A DNA stretch of 63,465 nt, counting the filler, from Octopus bimaculoides (lineage: Eukaryota), in assembly GCF_001194135.2 (NCBI RefSeq). It is 5 parts of 3 records of this genome, joined end to end, with 100 filler letters (N's around TTAATTAATTAA, not from the genome) between each part and the next. Parts side by side here need not be neighbours in the genome. Positions count along the whole stretch, not along the records: positions 1 to 9,827 come from NC_068990.1; 4 more parts are not named here. One strand, 5' to 3'. Position 1 is the first letter of the stretch. Every line of letters begins with the position of its first letter. The notes beneath the pieces are model-generated. The model was not told the origin of the DNA and searched no databases. It worked only from the letters and a program-made list of their open reading frames with translations. This document shows, in pieces, positions 333 through 11,439 of the stretch. Both the position numbers and the translations under genes were made by a program.

Positions 333-520
333 TTGTTGTATTTCGGGACAAGAATTTTTTTTGCCAAATACACACACACACTATATATTTTCTTCTTAAC
401 TCATTTATTACTGTTCTTATTTTATTACTTTAACTCGTGTCCATTGCCCAGAAATCTTTCATCGCACATCTATGACCTCTTCAATGACACTTTTCATTTT
501 TGTATGTGTTCTTGCTTCAG
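333..520 (-). mobile_element. Inverted pseudo-LTR at the 5' end of PLE-1
   Basis: Reverse complement aligns with 3266-3285 and 3766-3896 (gaagcaagaacac...HHR...gacaatggacatgagttaaagtaataaaataagaa...gtatttggcaaaaaa) and with 30420-30600. Confidence 0.7.
445..490 (-). ncRNA. Minimal type I hammerhead ribozyme, family 1, copy A (C3 mutated)
   Basis: GUGUCA-UUGAAGA-G-GUCAUA-GAUG-UGCGAU-GAAA-GAUUUC-UGGGCA. Confidence 0.55.
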
Positions 521-2584: not shown

Positions 2585-3287
2585 AGCCACCACCACACCA
2601 TACCACATAACTAAAGACAGTAGGGATGAGAAGAGAGAGGGAGAAGGAGGAAAAAAGCCATAAATAATACACAGAAAAATATGGGATAATACACACACAA
2701 TAGACATATATGCATTTACTGGTGATACTTATGACAAATAGAAATAGATGTATACAAAGAAATAGATAAATTTATAAATAGATAAATAATTAAATATATA
2801 AATATATTTGTCACATACCTGTGATAAATGTAAGACAGAGATAGATAAAATGAAAAAATGAAACTGCATAAAGGGCATGGATACATACGAAGCGAACCCA
2901 TACACACACACACATGAAACTTTATGGATGGCCATAACAATGTCAACAACAAAACTAAGAGTCTGCAGGAACAGTGGTGCTAATGATGGTAATAACAACA
3001 ACAACTACCATGATGGCAACACCATGGGCAAACACACATACACAAAGTAATACAGGAACTGTACTATTTTTTATTCCCAGGAGAGTAGCAGCACAATTGG
3101 GTGAGAGGAAGGGGCTGAGGGGAAGGCCACACTGCTGCTAAAATCTATGACACACACACACAAGCATACATTCACATACACACACATGCACATGCACACA
3201 CACAAACAAGGACACAAATGCATGCACACAAGGATACACATCTTAGAAGAACAGAATGGAGTAAGTGAAGCAAGAACACACACAGCA

Positions 3288-3765
3288 TTATCATCATCAT
3301 CATCGTTTAACGTTCGCCTTCCATGCTAGCATGGGCTGGACGATTTGACTGAGGACTGGCGAACCAGAAGGCTGCACTAGGCTCCAATCTGATCTGGCAG
3401 AGTTTCTACAGCTGGATGCCCTTCCTAATGCCAACCACTCCGAGATTGTAGTGGGTGCTTTTTCGTGCCACCGGCACGAGGGCCAGTCAGGTGGTACTGG
3501 CAATGGCCATGCTCAAAATGGTGTTTTTTACATGCCACCTGCATAGGAGCCAGTCCAGCGGCACTGGCAACGACCTCGCTCGAATGTTTTGTTCATGTTC
3601 TACCAGCACAAGTGCCAGTAAGGCGACGCTGGTAACAATCACGCTCAAATGATGCTATTTATATCCACTGGCATGGAAGCCAGACAGCTGCTCTAGCAAT
3701 GATCATGCTCGGACGGTGCTCTTAGCGCTCCACTGACAGAGGTGCCAGTCATCGAATTTGGTTCA
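3288..3765 (-). mobile_element. RTE LINE 3'UTR fragment with (GAT)n tail
   Basis: Reverse complement matches 6300-6804, including the tandem units and ggaagggcatccagctgtagaaac. Confidence 0.8.
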
Positions 3766-3809
3766 ATCACTGAAGCGGTCACAGATGTGTGACGAAAGAT
3801 TTCTAGACA
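3766..3809 (+). ncRNA. Hammerhead family 1, copy B (A9 mutated)
   Basis: UCA-CUGAAGC-G-GUCACA-GAUG-UGUGAC-GAAA-GAUUUC-UAGACA; perfect 6-bp helix II. Confidence 0.6.
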
Positions 3810-4115
3810 ATGGACATGAGTTAAAGTAATAAAATAAGAAGTGGTAAATGGGTGGAGAAAAAAATATAGAGTGCGTGTGTTTATTTCGCAAAAAANNNNN
3901 NNNNNTGATGCACCTCCTTGAAAAATGCATTTTTTTGAAAATTTTTTTTCGGATTCCTACATTTTAGATGTCAGAGGTTATGAATATGCAAAAAATAAAT
4001 TTTTTTTTCAGAGATTTAATATAGCCTCTTTCTCCTTCTTCAAGGTCAGTGATGGTTCGTCGGTGGAAAAAGCATATAGTATTTTGCAAGTGGGGTAAGT
4101 TTTCATCACTAGTTA

Positions 4116-4220: not shown

Positions 4221-6804
4221 CAGACAGAAGGGAAGTTAGGAGACAGGTTTATTTAGCCAGACGGGAAGGAAATAAAAAGAATTTGCCAATGTTCTGCGCC
4301 ATGAGGACCGAAGACTTGAGGTATTTTGTGTTGCAAGACAGTGTGTGAGAGAGAATCGTGATATCATAGGAGAGAAATATGTCTGCATGGATGATGGTTC
4401 ACTTGCATTAAACAAGGCTGCAAAGAGAGACGTTTAGAGATGCCACTATGAAAGGTTGAATGGGAGAAAGAGTCTGCCAAATTCCAACCCAACACAGGGA
4501 CCAGCTATCCGAATTGACAGTACCTTGGTAGATAAAGCAATTAAGGGTATGAAGACAAGGAAAGACCCCAGCCCATCAAAAATCACCGCAGATATGCTCA
4601 AAATATCTGGCAGTGTTGGCTATAACCTAGTCATCCATATAGTCAACCAGGTGATACTTGAAGGAGTAATACCCAATGACTGGTGTAGCAGTACCATAGT
4701 CAACTGCTACAAAGGTAAAGGTGACACATTAGATACAAATAATTACTGATGTATCAAGTTGTTGGATCAGGTAATGAAGGTCACAGAGAGGGTCATAGCC
4801 CAACTAATTATGGAGAAAGTCAGTCCAGAGGAGATGCAGTTTGGGTTTGTATCAGGGAAAAGCACCACTGATGCTATATTTCTGGTAAGACAGCTGCAAG
4901 AGAAATACCTAGCTAAAGATAAACCTCTGTACCTGGCTTTCATTGACATGGAGAAAGCCTTTGATAGGGTCCCCCAATCCCTTATCTGGTGGTCAATGAG
5001 AAAACTAGGGATAGATGAATGGTTAGTGAGAGCTGTGAAAGCCATATACAGGGATGCTGTCAGTAAGGTGAGGGTTAGCAACGAGTACAGTGAAGAATTC
5101 CGAGTAGGGGTAGGGGTCCACCAAGGATCGGTCCTCAGCCACCTCTTGTTCATCATTCTCCTCCAGGCAATAACAGAGGAATTCAAGACAGGATCTCCCT
5201 GGCAGCTCCTCTATGCTGATGACCTTGCTCTAATTGCTGAGTCACTATCAGAACTAGAAGAAAAGTTTCAGGTGTGGAAGCAAGGATTAGAATCAAAGGG
5301 CCTTAGAGCCAACCTAGCTAAATCCAAAGTCTTAATAAGTAGGAAGGCAGACAAACCACAAATCCCTTCAGGTAGATGGCTCAGCTTGATCTGTAGAAAA
5401 GGCATAGATAGAAACTCCATATGATGTATGCTATGGACACATAAGTGGTGCAGCAATATCGAAGGAAGGCTAACTGGGAGGATAGTTTTTGTATGTGGTA
5501 AATGCTCAGGAGCAATAAACACTGAAAATGTGCAGAGAACAGCTTCTGTCACCTTCCAGGGAGAAAAACTACAAGTAGTTGATAGCTTCCATTACCTAGG
5601 TGACCAAGTCAGTGGCAGGGGTGGATGCTCTGAAAGTGTAGCTGCTAGAATAAGAATAGCCCAGGCAAAGTTCAGAGAGCTCCTACTTCTGCTAGTGACA
5701 AAGGGCCTCTTGCTCAGAGTAAAAGGTAGACTGTATGACGCATGTGTACAAACAGCCATGCTACATGGCAGTGAAACATGGGCCATGACTGCTGACGACA
5801 TGTGTAAACTTGCAATGAATGAAGCAGTATGCTTCGATGGGTGTGTAATGTCAGTGTGCATACACGACAGAGTGTAAGCACCCTGAGAGAAAAGTTGGAC
5901 TTAAGAAGCATCAGATGTGGTGTGCAAGAGAGATGACTGTGCTGGTATGGTCATGTGTTGTGAATGGATGAGGACAGCTGTGTGAAAAAGTGTCACACCC
6001 TAGCAGTTGAGGGAACCTGTGGAAGAGGTAGACCCAGGAAGACCTGGAATGAGGTGGTGAAGCACGAACTTTGAACATTGGGGCTCACCGAGGCAATGAC
6101 TAGTGACTGAGACCTTTGGAGATATGCTGTGCTTGAGAAGACCTGGCAAACCAAGTGAGACCATAACCCGTGGCCTATGACAGTGGTGTATAACCAGCCC
6201 ACTTATGAGTATCCTTCATTCATTGGACAATAAACTTTGCTTGTGAAGACCTGTTGAGGCAAGTGAAATCAAAATCGCTGATGTAGCCGATGACAGTACC
6301 GCCTGATTGGCACCCATGCCAGTAGAACGTTAAAAGCACATCTGAGCGTGATCACTGCCAGGGCCGCTGACTGGCTGTCATGCTGGTGGCACATAAAAAG
6401 CACCATTTAAGTGTGATCGTTGCCAGTGTCCCCTTAGTGGCACGGGAAAAACAACATTCGAGCGTGGTCATTACCAGTGCCGCCAGACTGGCTCCCGTGC
6501 TGGTGGCACATAAAAAGCACCATTCGAGTGTAATCCTTGCCAGCGTCGCCTTAGTGGCACTTTTGGCAGTGGCACGTGAAAAACAGCATTTGAGCATGGT
6601 CATTGTCAGTACCGCCTGACTGGCACGTAAAAGCACCCACTACACTCTTGGTGTGGTTGGCGTTAGGAAGGGCATCCAGCTGTAGAAACTTTGCCAGACC
6701 AGATTGGAGCCTGGTGCAGCCTTCTGGCTCACCAGTCCTCAGTCGAATCGTCGAATCCATGCCAGCATGGAAAGCGGACGTTAAATGACGACGATGATGA
6801 TGAT
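4221..6804 (+). mobile_element. RTE-clade LINE, 5'-truncated, disrupted RT ORF
   Basis: LYLAFIDMEKAFDRVP, GVHQGSVLS and LLYADDLAL motifs; 3'UTR minisatellite and (GAT)n tail. Confidence 0.92.
6310..6640 (+). repeat. Minisatellite within the RTE 3'UTR
   Basis: Units start ggcac..aaaa and alternate about 51 and about 66 bp. Confidence 0.75.
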
Positions 6805-7005
6805 GTGTGTGTGTATGTATGTGTGTTTGTATTTGCTCCCTACCATCACTTGACAACTGATGCTGGTGGGTTTACGTCTCCATAAATTAGCTGTTCAGCA
6901 AAGGAAACTGATAGAATAAGTAATAGGCTTACAAAGAATAAGTTTTGGGATCGATTTGTTCGACTAAAGGCGGTGCTCCAGCATGACTGAAACAAATAAA
7001 AGAAT
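6805..7005 (+). mobile_element. SINE family A, 3' half
   Basis: Matches 57650-57833. Confidence 0.75.
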
Positions 7006-7144
7006 ACGTTTATGTATTCATTTTGCAAAATTCTTGATGTGAATTCATTTGTTGAAACAGAAATTGTTCTATTTGAGGAAGGTCATGTTGCCAGTTTAGC
7101 CAATGAAAACTTGCTTCAGCTTTATTTCATATTAATTGTATTTT

Positions 7145-7190
7145 GGCCAGAGTTCTTTCATCACACTTCTGTGACCTCATCAGTAGTCAT
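7145..7190 (-). ncRNA. Hammerhead family 1, copy C (catalytic core intact)
   Basis: AUGACUA-CUGAUGA-G-GUCACA-GAAG-UGUGAU-GAAA-GAACUC-UGGCCA; helix I pairs 5 of 6. Confidence 0.7.
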
Positions 7191-7548
7191 TGCATTCTTC
7201 TTTCCGTTTTTGTATCTCTCCTTCCTAACGATCTGCCATTTTGTATTCCTGTTGTATGTGCCTTTATTTGTGCATGCATATATCCCTCTGTGTGTCTATG
7301 TTTAGTAAGTGTGTGTGTAGGAATGTGTATGGTACCTGCATTATCAGTATCCCCTGTTTATTCACGTTCGTTTTATTTTATTCATTTTATTTATTTGTTT
7401 TTATCTACTTACTTTATCATTTCTTTCCTTTTTTTGTATTAATTTAATTTATTATATTTTGTTTATGTATATAATTATTTAATTCCATTTATCTATCTGT
7501 CTGTTGTATTAGTTTCGTATTATTATTAGTTATGGGGATCTTGTTCTG

Positions 7549-7902
7549 TCATAAGTTGTGGTGTGTGGGTGTGTGTGTATTAGTGTTCCATTCTAGTTTT
7601 CTGTTTAGGCTAGGTGTATCTTCTATTATGTGTGTAGCTTCCGTAATTTGCCTAAATGTTGCGTCCATTCTATGTATGGACAAGATTTTAACTTCTATGT
7701 TGTTGAGTGAGACCACATGTTCCCGCTCGGCATACTGGTATAGAACAAATGAACTCTTCTCTTCCTTAAGTTCCCTCCAAAGCTCATTTACTCACTCTCC
7801 TATGCTCCGTGCTGTTTCTCCTATGTATGTTGTTGTCTTGTTTCTGTACCGTCCCTCTGTACATCTTATCCTATAGACTACATTCCTAGCTTTACAGTTT
7901 AC
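7549..7902 (-). pseudogene. PLE-2 GIY-YIG endonuclease with one internal stop
   Basis: VNCKARNVVYRIRCTEGRYRNKTTTYIGETARSIGE*VNELWRELKEEKSSFVLYQYAEREH...RQITEATHIIEDTPSLNRKLEWN. Confidence 0.88.
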
Positions 7903-9827
7903 TAAACGAGGCTGCAAAGAAAGAGGTTCGGAGATGCCGCTACGAAAGATTGGTCAATAAAGAGAATGAATGAGAGAAAGAGAGTCGGCCAAATGTCGAC
8001 CCAACAGCGGGACCAGTTATCCGAATTGACAATACCATGGTAGATAAAGCAATTAAGAGTATGAAGACAGGGAAGGCCCCCCCAGCCCATCAGGAATCAC
8101 TGCAGAGATGCTCAAAATATCTGGCAGTGTCGGCTATAGCCTAGTCACCCGTATTGTTAACCAGGTGATTCACGAAAGAGTCATACCCAATGACTGGTGT
8201 AGCAGCACCATAGTCAACTGCTACAAAGGTAAAGGCGATGCTTTAGATACAAATAATTACAGAGGTATCAAGTTGTTAGATCAGGTAATGAAAGTCACGG
8301 AGAGGGTCATAGCCCAATTAATTAGGGAGAGAGTCAGTTTAGATGAGATGCAGTATGGGTTCGTTCCAAGAAAAGCACCCCTGATGCTATATTTCTGATA
8401 AGACAGCTGCAGGAGAAATACCTAGCCAAAGATAAACCGCTGTACCTGGCTTTCGTTGACATGGAGGAAGACTTTGACAGGGTCCCCCGCTCCCTTATCT
8501 GGTGGTCAATGAGGAAACTAGGGATAGATGAGTGGCTAGTGAGAGCTGTGCAAGCCATGTACAGAGATGCTGTCAGTAAGGTGAGGGCTGGAAATGAGTA
8601 CAGTGAAGAATTCTGGGTAGAGGTAGGGGTCCACCAAGGTTCTGTCCTCAGCCCCCTACTATTTGTCATAGTCCTCCAGGCTATAACAGAGGAATTCAAG
8701 AGATGATGCCCCTGGGAGCTCCTCTATGCTGATGACCTTGCCCTAATTGCGGAGTCACTATCAGAACTAGAGAAGTTTCAGGTGTGGAAGCAAGGACTAG
8801 AATCGAAGGGCCGTAGAGTCAACCTAGCTTAAACCAAAGTCCTAACAAGTAGGAAGGTAGACAAAACACAAACCCCTTCAGGTGGATGGCCCTGCTCAAT
8901 CTGTAGAAAAGGCGTAGGCAAAAACTCTATAAGATGCACCAAGTGCAAGATATGGACACATAAGTGGTGCAGCAATATCAAAGGAAAGTTAAGTAGGAAG
9001 TTAGTTTTTGTATGTAGCAGATGTTCAGGAGCAATACACACTGTGAATGTGCAGAAAACAACTTCTACCACATTCCACGGAGAAAAACTAGACGTAGTTG
9101 ATAGCTTCCGCTATCTGGGTGACCAAGTTAGTAATGGGGGAGGGTGCGCTGAAAGTGTAGCTGCTAGAATAAGAATAGCCTGGGCAAAGTTCAGAGAGTC
9201 TTACCTCTGCTGGTGACAAAGGGTCTCTCTCTCAGAGTAAAAGGCAGACTGTATAATGCATATGTACGAACAGCCATGCTTGATGGCAGTGAAGCATGGG
9301 CCATGACTGTTGAAGACAGATATAGGCTTGCAAGGAATGAAGCCAGTATGCTCCGATGGATGTGTAATGTCAGTGTGCATAATAGACAGAGCGTAAGTAC
9401 TTTGAGAGAAAAGTTAGACCTAAGAAGCATCAGTTGTGGTGTGCAAGAGAGACGATTGCGCTGGTATGATCATGTGGCAAGAATGGATCACAATAGCAGT
9501 GTGAAAAAGTGCCACTCTCGAGCAGTTGAGGTAACCTGTGGAAGCGGTAGGCCCAGGAAGACCTGGGCTGAGGTGGTGAGGCACGACCTTTGAACATTTG
9601 GCCTCACTGAGGCGATGACTTCTGACCAACACTTTTTGAAATACGCTGTGTGTGAGAAGACCCAGTAAGCCAAGTGAGATCTAAATCCAAGGCCTCCGCC
9701 AGGGGTGTAGCCAGCCCACTTATGCGTACCTTCCTTCATTGGACACAAAACTCCACTTGCGAAGACCTGTTGAGGCAAGTGAAATCGGAATCGAAATTGA
9801 ACTAAATTCGACAACTGGCACCCATGC
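7901..9827 (+). mobile_element. RTE-clade LINE, second copy of the 4221-6804 family
   Basis: Collinear homology; YRGIKLL, GVHQGSVLSPLLF and YADDL motifs; runs into a gap. Confidence 0.92.
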
Positions 9828-10837: not shown

Positions 10838-11439
10838 AATTAAGATATAAACTCAAATTAGACAATCATTCTCATAAAGTTATATATTCGACTTAAAATG
10901 CGTATACATATATATATATTAATATATTAATATATTAATAATANNNNNNNNNNNNNNNNNNNNNNNNNNNNNNNNNNNNNNNNNNNNNNNNNNNNNNNNN
11001 NNNNNNNNNNNNNNNNNNNNNNNNNNNNNNNNNNNNNNNNNNNNNNNNNNNNNNNNNNNNNNNNNNNNNNNNNNNNNNNNNNNNNNNNNNNNNNNNNNNN
11101 NNNNNNNNNNNNNNNNNNNNNNNNNNNNNNNNNNNNNNNNNNNNNNNNNCGCAGACGTTCTCTTTCGACATCGTTCACACGCGCCTGACTGGGGCTCAGA
11201 AGTCACAGCCCGAGTTGTTATCTATAATCGTGAAAATTAAAAGCAATCCAAATTCAATGTTTTCTTGAAACAATAAATTTCTACAGAGATTATGATTTAA
11301 ATTTCAATCTATGAAAAGTTTCTGTTCTGCAATATTCTTGAAGAAACAAAAAGTTATTCAGCAACTCGGGCTAATACGAACGAGCCTGGTAGGTGTAAAA
11401 GACTAACTGGCGTTTTTTGTCAAGAGTACAGGCGACTGT

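Follow-up and report, generated by a model that had tools for sequence, protein, structure and literature searches.

Three copies of a hammerhead motif, here called A, B and C, lie in a 9.8-kb piece of eukaryotic, repeat-rich DNA from Octopus bimaculoides, and we consider it very likely that they are relics of the minimal type I hammerhead ribozymes (min-HHRs) of the 3', or pseudo-LTR, region of Penelope-like elements (PLEs). The piece is part of a window of 63,465 nucleotides, this being the whole stretch of DNA covered by the first-pass annotation. The copies have a common architecture, they are placed beside remnants of PLE open reading frames, they are conserved above their flanks, and helix II and the core pair 3-8 of the motif covary among PLE relatives. 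Both the sequence features and the genomic context agree with this class; the PLE min-hammerhead reading of the first-pass annotation is supported by them and by the matches of a covariance model, R1, built from sequences outside the window. The class has been known since 2014, with dimer cleavage following in 2016-17, and the window motif is an ordinary member of it. By analogy with the published class, the ancestors of these copies would have cleaved as dimers and would have served in the processing of PLE transcripts.

Architecture of the three motif copies

Min-HHRs were defined by Cervera & de la Pena (2014, PMC4209133), whose survey met them in the repeats flanking every PLE examined. 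Helix II of these ribozymes is larger than usual (6-8 bp) and helix I is short (4-5 bp); one nucleotide is unpaired between A9 and position 10.1, the latter being G, and helix III is absent or tiny, with a palindromic 15.2-16.2, which makes them workable only as dimers. Their place is in the terminal repeats of elements that code for a reverse transcriptase (RT) and a GIY-YIG endonuclease; single copies, tandem copies and copies on opposite strands are all known, and their activity in vitro is low, dimers included (PMC4209133). Dimer cleavage of min-HHRs is credited in PMC6765202 to Lunse, Weinberg & Breaker (2016-17). The window copies share with the min-HHRs of PLEs the type I topology, the core boxes, the bulge after A9, G10.1, the 6-bp helix II, the short helix I and, apparently, the loop-less, near-palindromic helix III, as well as a location near the end of an element with RT and GIY-YIG and the occurrence as single, tandem or inverted copies. 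They differ from the published ones in being decayed and, for A and B, in having G-U at 15.2-16.2.

Of the five copies listed in the first-pass annotation, the analysis covered the three that fall within the 9.8-kb piece, the other two (30469 and 42901) lying beyond it. All three sit where they had been placed, about 3.3 kb apart and in mixed orientations. Copy C (about 7144-7190, minus strand) is the only one with an intact core. Along its strand, the 5' side of helix I, UGACUA (7189-7184), is followed by CUGAUGA (7183-7177), an extra G (7176), the two sides of helix II, GUCACA (7175-7170) and UGUGAU (7165-7160, position 11.1 being U), around the loop GAAG (7169-7166), then GAAA (7159-7156), the helix III bases AGAACU (7156-7151), C17 (7150) and the 3' side of helix I, UGGCCA (7149-7144). 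The predicted position of cleavage is between 7150 and 7149. Copy A (445-490, minus strand) is mutated in its core, and reads UUGAAGA (484-478, with U in place of C3), an extra G (477), GUCAUA (476-471) and UGCGAU (466-461) around the loop GAUG, GAAA (460-457), AGAUUU (457-452), C17 (451) and UGGGCA (450-445). Copy B (about 3764-3809, plus strand) is likewise core-mutated, with CUGAAGC (3770-3776, with C in place of A9), an extra G (3777), GUCACA (3778-3783) and UGUGAC (3788-3793), again around GAUG, GAAA (3794-3797), AGAUUU (3797-3802) and C17 (3803).

Both core boxes, with a pairable 3-8, are thus intact in C, as had been claimed for it, and A and B carry one substitution each (U3, giving a U-G pair, and C9, respectively). 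The unpaired nucleotide after A9 is G in all three, and an unpaired nucleotide is present there in 15 of 15 aligned relatives. Helix II has 6 bp, closed by a G-C pair in B and by G-U in A and C, and in A it contains one internal A/C mismatch and extra G-U pairs. A non-G residue, C17, is found in every copy. Helix I keeps 5 of 6 pairs in C (UGACUA/UGGCCA), in agreement with the first-pass annotation, 5 bp with a bulge in A, and only about 2 bp in B, whose element is truncated just 5' of the motif, against an array of 66-nt repeats. The six bases of helix III are AGAUUU in A and B, which includes two G-U pairs, and AGAACU in C, where the outer two pairs are accompanied by A-A mismatches.

The string CUGANGA-R-GUCACA-loop-UGUGAC-GAAA-GAUUUC, previously described as common to the family, holds as a consensus and is complete in none of A, B and C. 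Similarly, the contrast drawn earlier between a conserved helix II and a variable loop is weak in the piece, the loops being GAUG, GAUG and GAAG and helix II being altered in A and C. The motif is conserved above its flanks: over the 45-nt motif, C is 73-76% identical to A or B, against 38-54% over 100 nt on each side. Copies A and B are 85% identical over a longer stretch (357-487 versus 3895-3767). When the 22-nt pattern GTCACAGANGTGTGAYGAAAGA (helix II plus GAAAGA) was searched with up to three mismatches, it matched A, B and C only (0.01 matches expected), and the strict pattern CTGANGA-N17-GAAA has copy C as its sole match in the piece (0.03 expected).

The R1 model was made from eleven motifs outside the window that lie beside related PLE open reading frames, and the whole piece was scanned with it, filters off. 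It returned exactly copies B, C and A (38.4, 34.0 and 27.7 bits; E 5e-9, 9e-8 and 5e-6), the next best match having 14.2 bits; the scores of the window copies are somewhat inflated, since one of the motifs in the model (from contig L003) has the helix II of the window. The 14.2-bit match (E about 0.03) is at 3912-3951 on the plus strand, in AT-rich sequence just past an assembly gap (3896-3905), and is probably spurious. The Rfam hammerhead models (types I, II and III, HH9 and HH10) gave no match at E<=10, either in the whole piece or in 7100-7240 (141 nt). They are likewise silent on the relatives with intact cores, and this negative result therefore reflects the coverage of the models, which do not accommodate a loop-less helix III, and not the absence of a hammerhead.

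The UGAUGA and CUGA boxes of copy C could also be read as those of a box C/D snoRNA-like element, and Rfam archaeal and eukaryotic C/D families do match weakly at 7145-7206 on the minus strand. We regard this as extremely improbable: the scores are 8-16 bits against gathering thresholds of 36-70, with E of 0.5-10, the boxes are accounted for by CUGAUGA and UGAUGAAA, both belonging to the hammerhead core, and they are lost in copies A and B. The snoRNA reading of copy C is accordingly disfavoured, and the weak Rfam matches to C/D snoRNAs, together with those of microsatellite sequence to 'miRNA' families, were rejected as spurious. A search of the piece for tRNAs found none.

Hammerheads of other systems share some of these traits. 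Those of newt satellite 2 and of avocado sunblotch viroid have a helix III that is too short to fold by itself, like that of the window motif, and are active as dimers through an extended helix III; unlike the window motif, they keep a small helix III loop and conserved contacts between loop 1 and loop 2, and they are found in satellite repeats or in a viroid, not beside an RT-endonuclease open reading frame. For dimer-active type I hammerheads the source is Forster et al. (1988), as cited in PMC6765202 and PMC6155905. The plus-strand hammerhead of chrysanthemum chlorotic mottle viroid likewise has one unpaired nucleotide between A9 and helix II, an extra residue attributed to De la Pena & Flores (2001) where that work is cited in PMC4209133; this hammerhead is type III with full helices, and the bulge is the only feature that it has in common with the window motif. 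Neither the helix II GUCACA/UGUGAY nor an octopus host is mentioned in the min-HHR papers examined.

Penelope-like element remnants around the copies

Copy C was claimed to lie downstream of a GIY-YIG open reading frame, and this is borne out by the reading frame itself, by its relatives (phmmer) and by tblastn. The remnant, which is the C-terminal endonuclease part of a first element (PLE 2), spans 7552-7953 on the minus strand with one in-frame stop (7792-7794). Read from 7953 to 7552, the frame gives ...VVYRIRC...YIGETARSIGE*...AEREH...ITEATHI, and it ends about 365 nt upstream of the CUGA box of copy C; the 5' part of the open reading frame is cut off by a LINE-like copy (7903-9793). A phmmer search of 1.84 billion representative proteins yielded 136 relatives of the fragment at E<=1e-3, and the homology of the PLE relatives maps to 7947-7567 on the minus strand (tblastn). 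Pfam GIY-YIG is matched by 15 of 34 aligned relatives. One of them, P0123, carries RVT_1 at 341-482 and, C-terminal to it, GIY-YIG at 648-687; its residues 643-738 align with the window fragment. The consensus of the relatives, SNPF..C....C.VC.......CK.R.VVY.I.C...YIGET.RS..ER..EH...TEA..I, corresponds to a Cys-rich linker (C-x4-C-x-x-C) and then the GIY-YIG domain. The closest named relative is a protein of Octopus bimaculoides itself (XP_052825841.1, 53% identity). The endonuclease fragment had no match in a word-indexed protein search, sequence searches of the PDB that used the endonuclease profile and the relative P0175 gave chance matches or none, and Pfam, run on the short open reading frame fragments of the piece, detected no domain on the PLE fragments and only RVT_1, in a LINE-like copy.

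A second element, PLE 1, is represented on the plus strand by the C-terminal half of the RT and the Cys-rich linker (518-1256), which by tblastn are colinear with residues 335-560 of P0028, a protein with RT motifs, YVDD among them, and with residues 111-360 of P0024. The RT is truncated at its 5' end and adjoins the inverted copy A at about 520. The relative P0001 is 53% identical to this fragment over part of the query; the one match in a protein search with the RT fragment was a Logan protein of 109 aa, on a 1.1-kb contig. The C-terminal half of the GIY-YIG domain of PLE 1 follows at 2359-2560 on the plus strand (tblastn), its DNA being 67% identical to 7881-7546. Between it and the rest of the open reading frame, extra DNA of about 1.1 kb (1257-2358) splits the GIY-YIG domain. 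Compared with the homologous proteins, the two sides of this segment lack only about 8 residues; the segment may be an intron or a nested insertion. The colinear fragments follow the PLE architecture, with RT, Cys-rich linker and C-terminal GIY-YIG in one open reading frame, of which only remnants survive in the piece.

Copies A and B flank the 5'-truncated RT-endonuclease open reading frame of PLE 1, B on its downstream side and A in an inverted partial copy. Craig et al. (2021, PMC8557442) describe as typical of PLEs that inverted 5'-truncated copies adjoin the element, that hammerheads lie close to the 3' end and that microsatellites serve as insertion sites, and in the window the inverted 5'-truncated copy is accompanied by microsatellite ends, (TG)n at 25-81 and a GT-rich stretch at 6795-6835. 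In both A and C, a tail block of about 180 nt, 88% identical between the two, starts 160-210 nt further 3' and is followed by the microsatellite. Downstream of A it occupies 53-235 on the minus strand and ends in (CA)n on the element strand, that is, in the (TG)n of the plus strand (TRF); downstream of C it occupies 6804-6985, also on the minus strand, and then runs into the GT-rich microsatellite. The tail block is 90% identical to positions 5696-5926 of another Octopus bimaculoides locus (L012, chromosome CM046608.1), and no hammerhead was found near that site. Its extents, 180-230 nt, are 55-278 and 6803-6985 in the window, and 5696-5926 and 16973-17240 in L012. The tail block may be the 3' end of a PLE surviving in heavily truncated copies, or it may be a separate short repeat.

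A second conserved block, GTGCGTGTGTTTATTT, is found about 65 nt downstream of copy B, at 3871-3886 on the plus strand (alignment A6). It is also present downstream of A (about 380-357, minus strand), in L003 (about 1900-1915) and in L012 (about 11340-11355), and in several elements it lies 40-100 nt 3' of the hammerhead. It may be another 3'-UTR signal. The remaining repeats include further microsatellites and two arrays of 66-nt units (3276-3751 and 6304-6814), which are mutually inverted and 73-79% identical; one adjoins copy B, and the other comes after the tail of the element of copy C. There are also two LINE-like RT copies (4409-6277 and 7903-9793) on the plus strand, with 84% identity to each other and a YADD motif in their RVT_1 reverse transcriptase.

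These surroundings bear on whether A and B came from an autonomous PLE at all. They might instead derive from a short non-autonomous element, an animal 'retrozyme' or SINE-like unit borrowing the PLE machinery. Copy B lies 1.2 kb past the end of the endonuclease open reading frame, directly after the 66-nt repeat array, and copy A has no open reading frame upstream in its own orientation; moreover, a 2026 preprint ties animal retrozymes to PLE pseudo-LTRs. Animal non-LTR retrozymes (Cervera & de la Pena 2020, PMC7229834, and the same preprint) indeed resemble the window motif in consisting of hammerhead repeats related to PLE pseudo-LTRs; they are, however, short head-to-tail units that lack open reading frames and give circular RNAs, and the piece contains no such array and no head-to-tail tandem units with the motif. 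Copy A is placed as one would expect of the inverted 5'-truncated copy that PLEs usually have (PMC8557442), and contig L003 shares both the helix II of the window and its downstream block, the motif coming only 85 nt after an intact PLE open reading frame of 547 aa. We thus consider a non-autonomous origin of A and B distinctly unlikely, and retain the 3' region of PLEs as their source. The core substitutions in A and B, the weakened helix III of C and the broken open reading frames all suggest that the three copies are probably no longer active.

Relatives on other contigs and covariation

A profile search recovered 189 related PLE proteins, and the DNA surrounding eleven of them was examined. 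A minimal hammerhead is present on 10 of 10 metagenome and genome contigs that encode related PLE proteins. In nine of these ten it overlaps the stop of the open reading frame or lies at most about 410 nt downstream, on the same strand; the tenth contig (L007) ends just past the open reading frame, and its only copy of the motif is an inverted one upstream. At the Octopus bimaculoides locus the match, 405 nt past the open reading frame, is weaker and decayed (20.8 bits, E about 1e-3), with helix III disrupted. A metagenome scan for GTCACANNNNTGTGAYGAAAGATTT had 0 matches.

Helix II differs widely among the relatives (GCCGCC/GGCGGU, GUUUAC/GUAGAC, GUUACC/GGUGAC, GUUGAC/GUUAAC, GGCCUA/UAGGCC, GGAGA/UCUCC and GCCUCA/UGAGGC), and that of L003 is the GUCACA/UGUGAC of the window. 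Most relatives have a cleanly palindromic helix III (AAUU, AAAUUU, AGCU, AAUAUU or AACGUU), and in L006 it is AGAUCU. In alignment A5, which contains 15 hammerheads, loop 2 is mostly GNNG (first G in 12 of 15, last G in 14 of 15), and it is often GAAG even across wholly different helices II. On contig L002, the hammerhead overlapping the PLE stop (5364-5391, plus strand) has a near-identical inverted copy 2.2 kb upstream (3140-3167, minus strand), the same arrangement as that of copy A with PLE 1.

Among the PLE relatives, helix II covaries strongly. In the 15-sequence model alignment, changes on both sides of a pair occur in 29 cells, compared with 8.8 after shuffling, and compensatory changes are found at 7 of 7 modelled pairs. 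Paired cells amount to 94%, as against 67% in shuffled alignments and 24-48% when the partner is slid, a percentage that is partly obtained by construction because the relatives were collected with a descriptor that requires the boxes and pairing in helix II; the search of dinucleotide shuffles with this descriptor, given next, is the fairer test. Core residues U4, G5 and A6, and G12, A13, A14 and A15.1, are invariant in the 15 copies, and the core pair 3-8 is C-G in eight, G-C in three, U-A in three and U-G in one.

The descriptor asked only for the boxes and for at least five pairs in helix II. It found 19 matches in the real sequences and 4.8 +/- 2.1 in 100 dinucleotide shuffles. The features for which it did not ask (G10.1 with the bulged base before it, the pairs 15.1-16.1 and 15.2-16.2, any base but G at 17, and at least 3 bp in helix I) are all present in 11 of the 19 real matches, and no match in the 100 shuffles has them all. 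It could be argued that the window motif is merely a transposon fragment in which CUGANGA and GAAA happen to surround a hairpin, transposition alone explaining the copies, given that there are three copies only, two of them with core changes, that the boxes are short and that no Rfam hammerhead model matches. Chance resemblance is already disfavoured by the low number of expected matches (0.01-0.03), by the shuffles, which gave a full-feature match in 0 of 100, by the strong covariation and by the independent R1 model, which picks exactly A, B and C; the same architecture, with differing helices II, is moreover associated with ten related open reading frames. Such a coincidence is in our view very improbable.

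Some of the variants at the core pair are of interest in themselves. A natural G3-C8 box, GUGAACA, occurs on three contigs, each with a different helix II (L003 1840-1867, L008 2766-2793 and L011 3284-3311), and U3-A8 variants (UUGAGAA, UUGACAA) occur on three more (L005 2594-2623, L006 2659-2691 and L007 88-115, minus strand). U3-A8 forms have already been described for Schistosoma PLEs. In the papers examined, Lunse et al. aside, we found only U3-A8 and an engineered C3G/G8C rescue, and no natural G3-C8; such natural forms may already be known.

Helix III, dimer folding and the role of the motif

The first-pass annotation held that helix III is too short to fold in cis, and it is: there is no loop in A and B, and in C two pairs would surround a 2-nt loop. 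AGAUUU is self-complementary with G-U pairs, as also stated there; it needs two of them, and the duplex has a predicted energy of about 0 kcal/mol (ViennaRNA). The motif combines the core (CUGANGA, GAAA and C17) with a short helix I and a 6-bp helix II from which one purine bulges out after A9; in place of a closed helix III there are six near-palindromic bases after GAA. In the mode of action proposed for the published class, two copies, whether on one tandem transcript or on two transcripts, would pair through these palindromes into an extended helix III; helix I would form in trans, resulting in a 'double hammerhead' in which each core would cut after position 17. The purpose of such cleavage would be the processing of PLE precursor RNA, possibly with the help of the element's own protein.

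Plain MFE folding of monomers or dimers did not reproduce the hammerhead fold. The nested double hammerhead of copy C has a predicted energy of -8.2 kcal/mol, versus -23.7 for the unconstrained dimer; with AGAUUU in place of its own helix III bases it reaches -10.4 kcal/mol and with AGAUCU -15.6 kcal/mol, so that the double hammerhead lies well above the unconstrained dimer MFE for all three versions of helix III. These unfavourable energies agree with the low activity in vitro reported for min-HHRs. They also fit the observations on a PLE hammerhead of Anolis (2024, PMC11167929), which was cleaved only when the protein of the element was present. In the same work, a C3G/G8C double mutant partly restored activity, insertion in vitro did not depend on cleavage, and RNA ends at the cut site were not observed (PMC11167929).

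An ancestral AGAUCU, as suggested in the first-pass annotation, is plausible but unproven. L006 has exactly this sequence, and copy C (AGAACU) and L003 (AGACU) keep the G15.2-C16.2 pair. Parsimony within the piece does not separate the two candidates, AGAUCU and AGAUUU requiring two changes each.

One might suppose that the motif is kept in PLEs for a reason other than cleavage, as a binding or folding signal for the RT-endonuclease or as a selfish passenger, with a core that is largely vestigial in animals. The published minimal hammerheads do cleave poorly in vitro (PMC4209133), the Anolis findings of protein-dependent cleavage, of insertion without cleavage and of missing RNA ends point in the same direction (PMC11167929), hammerheads may simply parasitise PLEs (Craig et al., PMC8557442), and the predicted helix III of the window copies is very weak. 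Against this, the exact catalytic nucleotides are invariant in 15 copies although the elements that carry them are divergent, the 3-8 pair covaries (C-G, U-A, G-C), as expected if a pair of the active site matters, and both the palindromic 15.x-16.x and a non-G at 17 are kept. On balance we find a role unrelated to cleavage rather unlikely, and favour relics of once-cleaving min-HHRs. It is tempting to go further: this cephalopod-type PLE lineage, with its relatives, may contain a natural range of minimal hammerheads in which the active-site pair 3-8 was exchanged several times, and the G-U palindrome of A and B may point to a dimer that is protein-assisted or otherwise regulated and not to simple decay. 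This two-part reading we regard as speculative and unlikely.

The main use of these results is in annotation. The three sites, the open reading frame remnants and the tail repeats are best described as PLE debris, and not as a new class of ribozyme. The Rfam hammerhead models miss the whole class, and with some ten relatives a small covariance model is enough to find the copies cleanly. The relatives also form a compact natural covariation set, 3-8 swaps included, for the study of what the minimal hammerhead tolerates.
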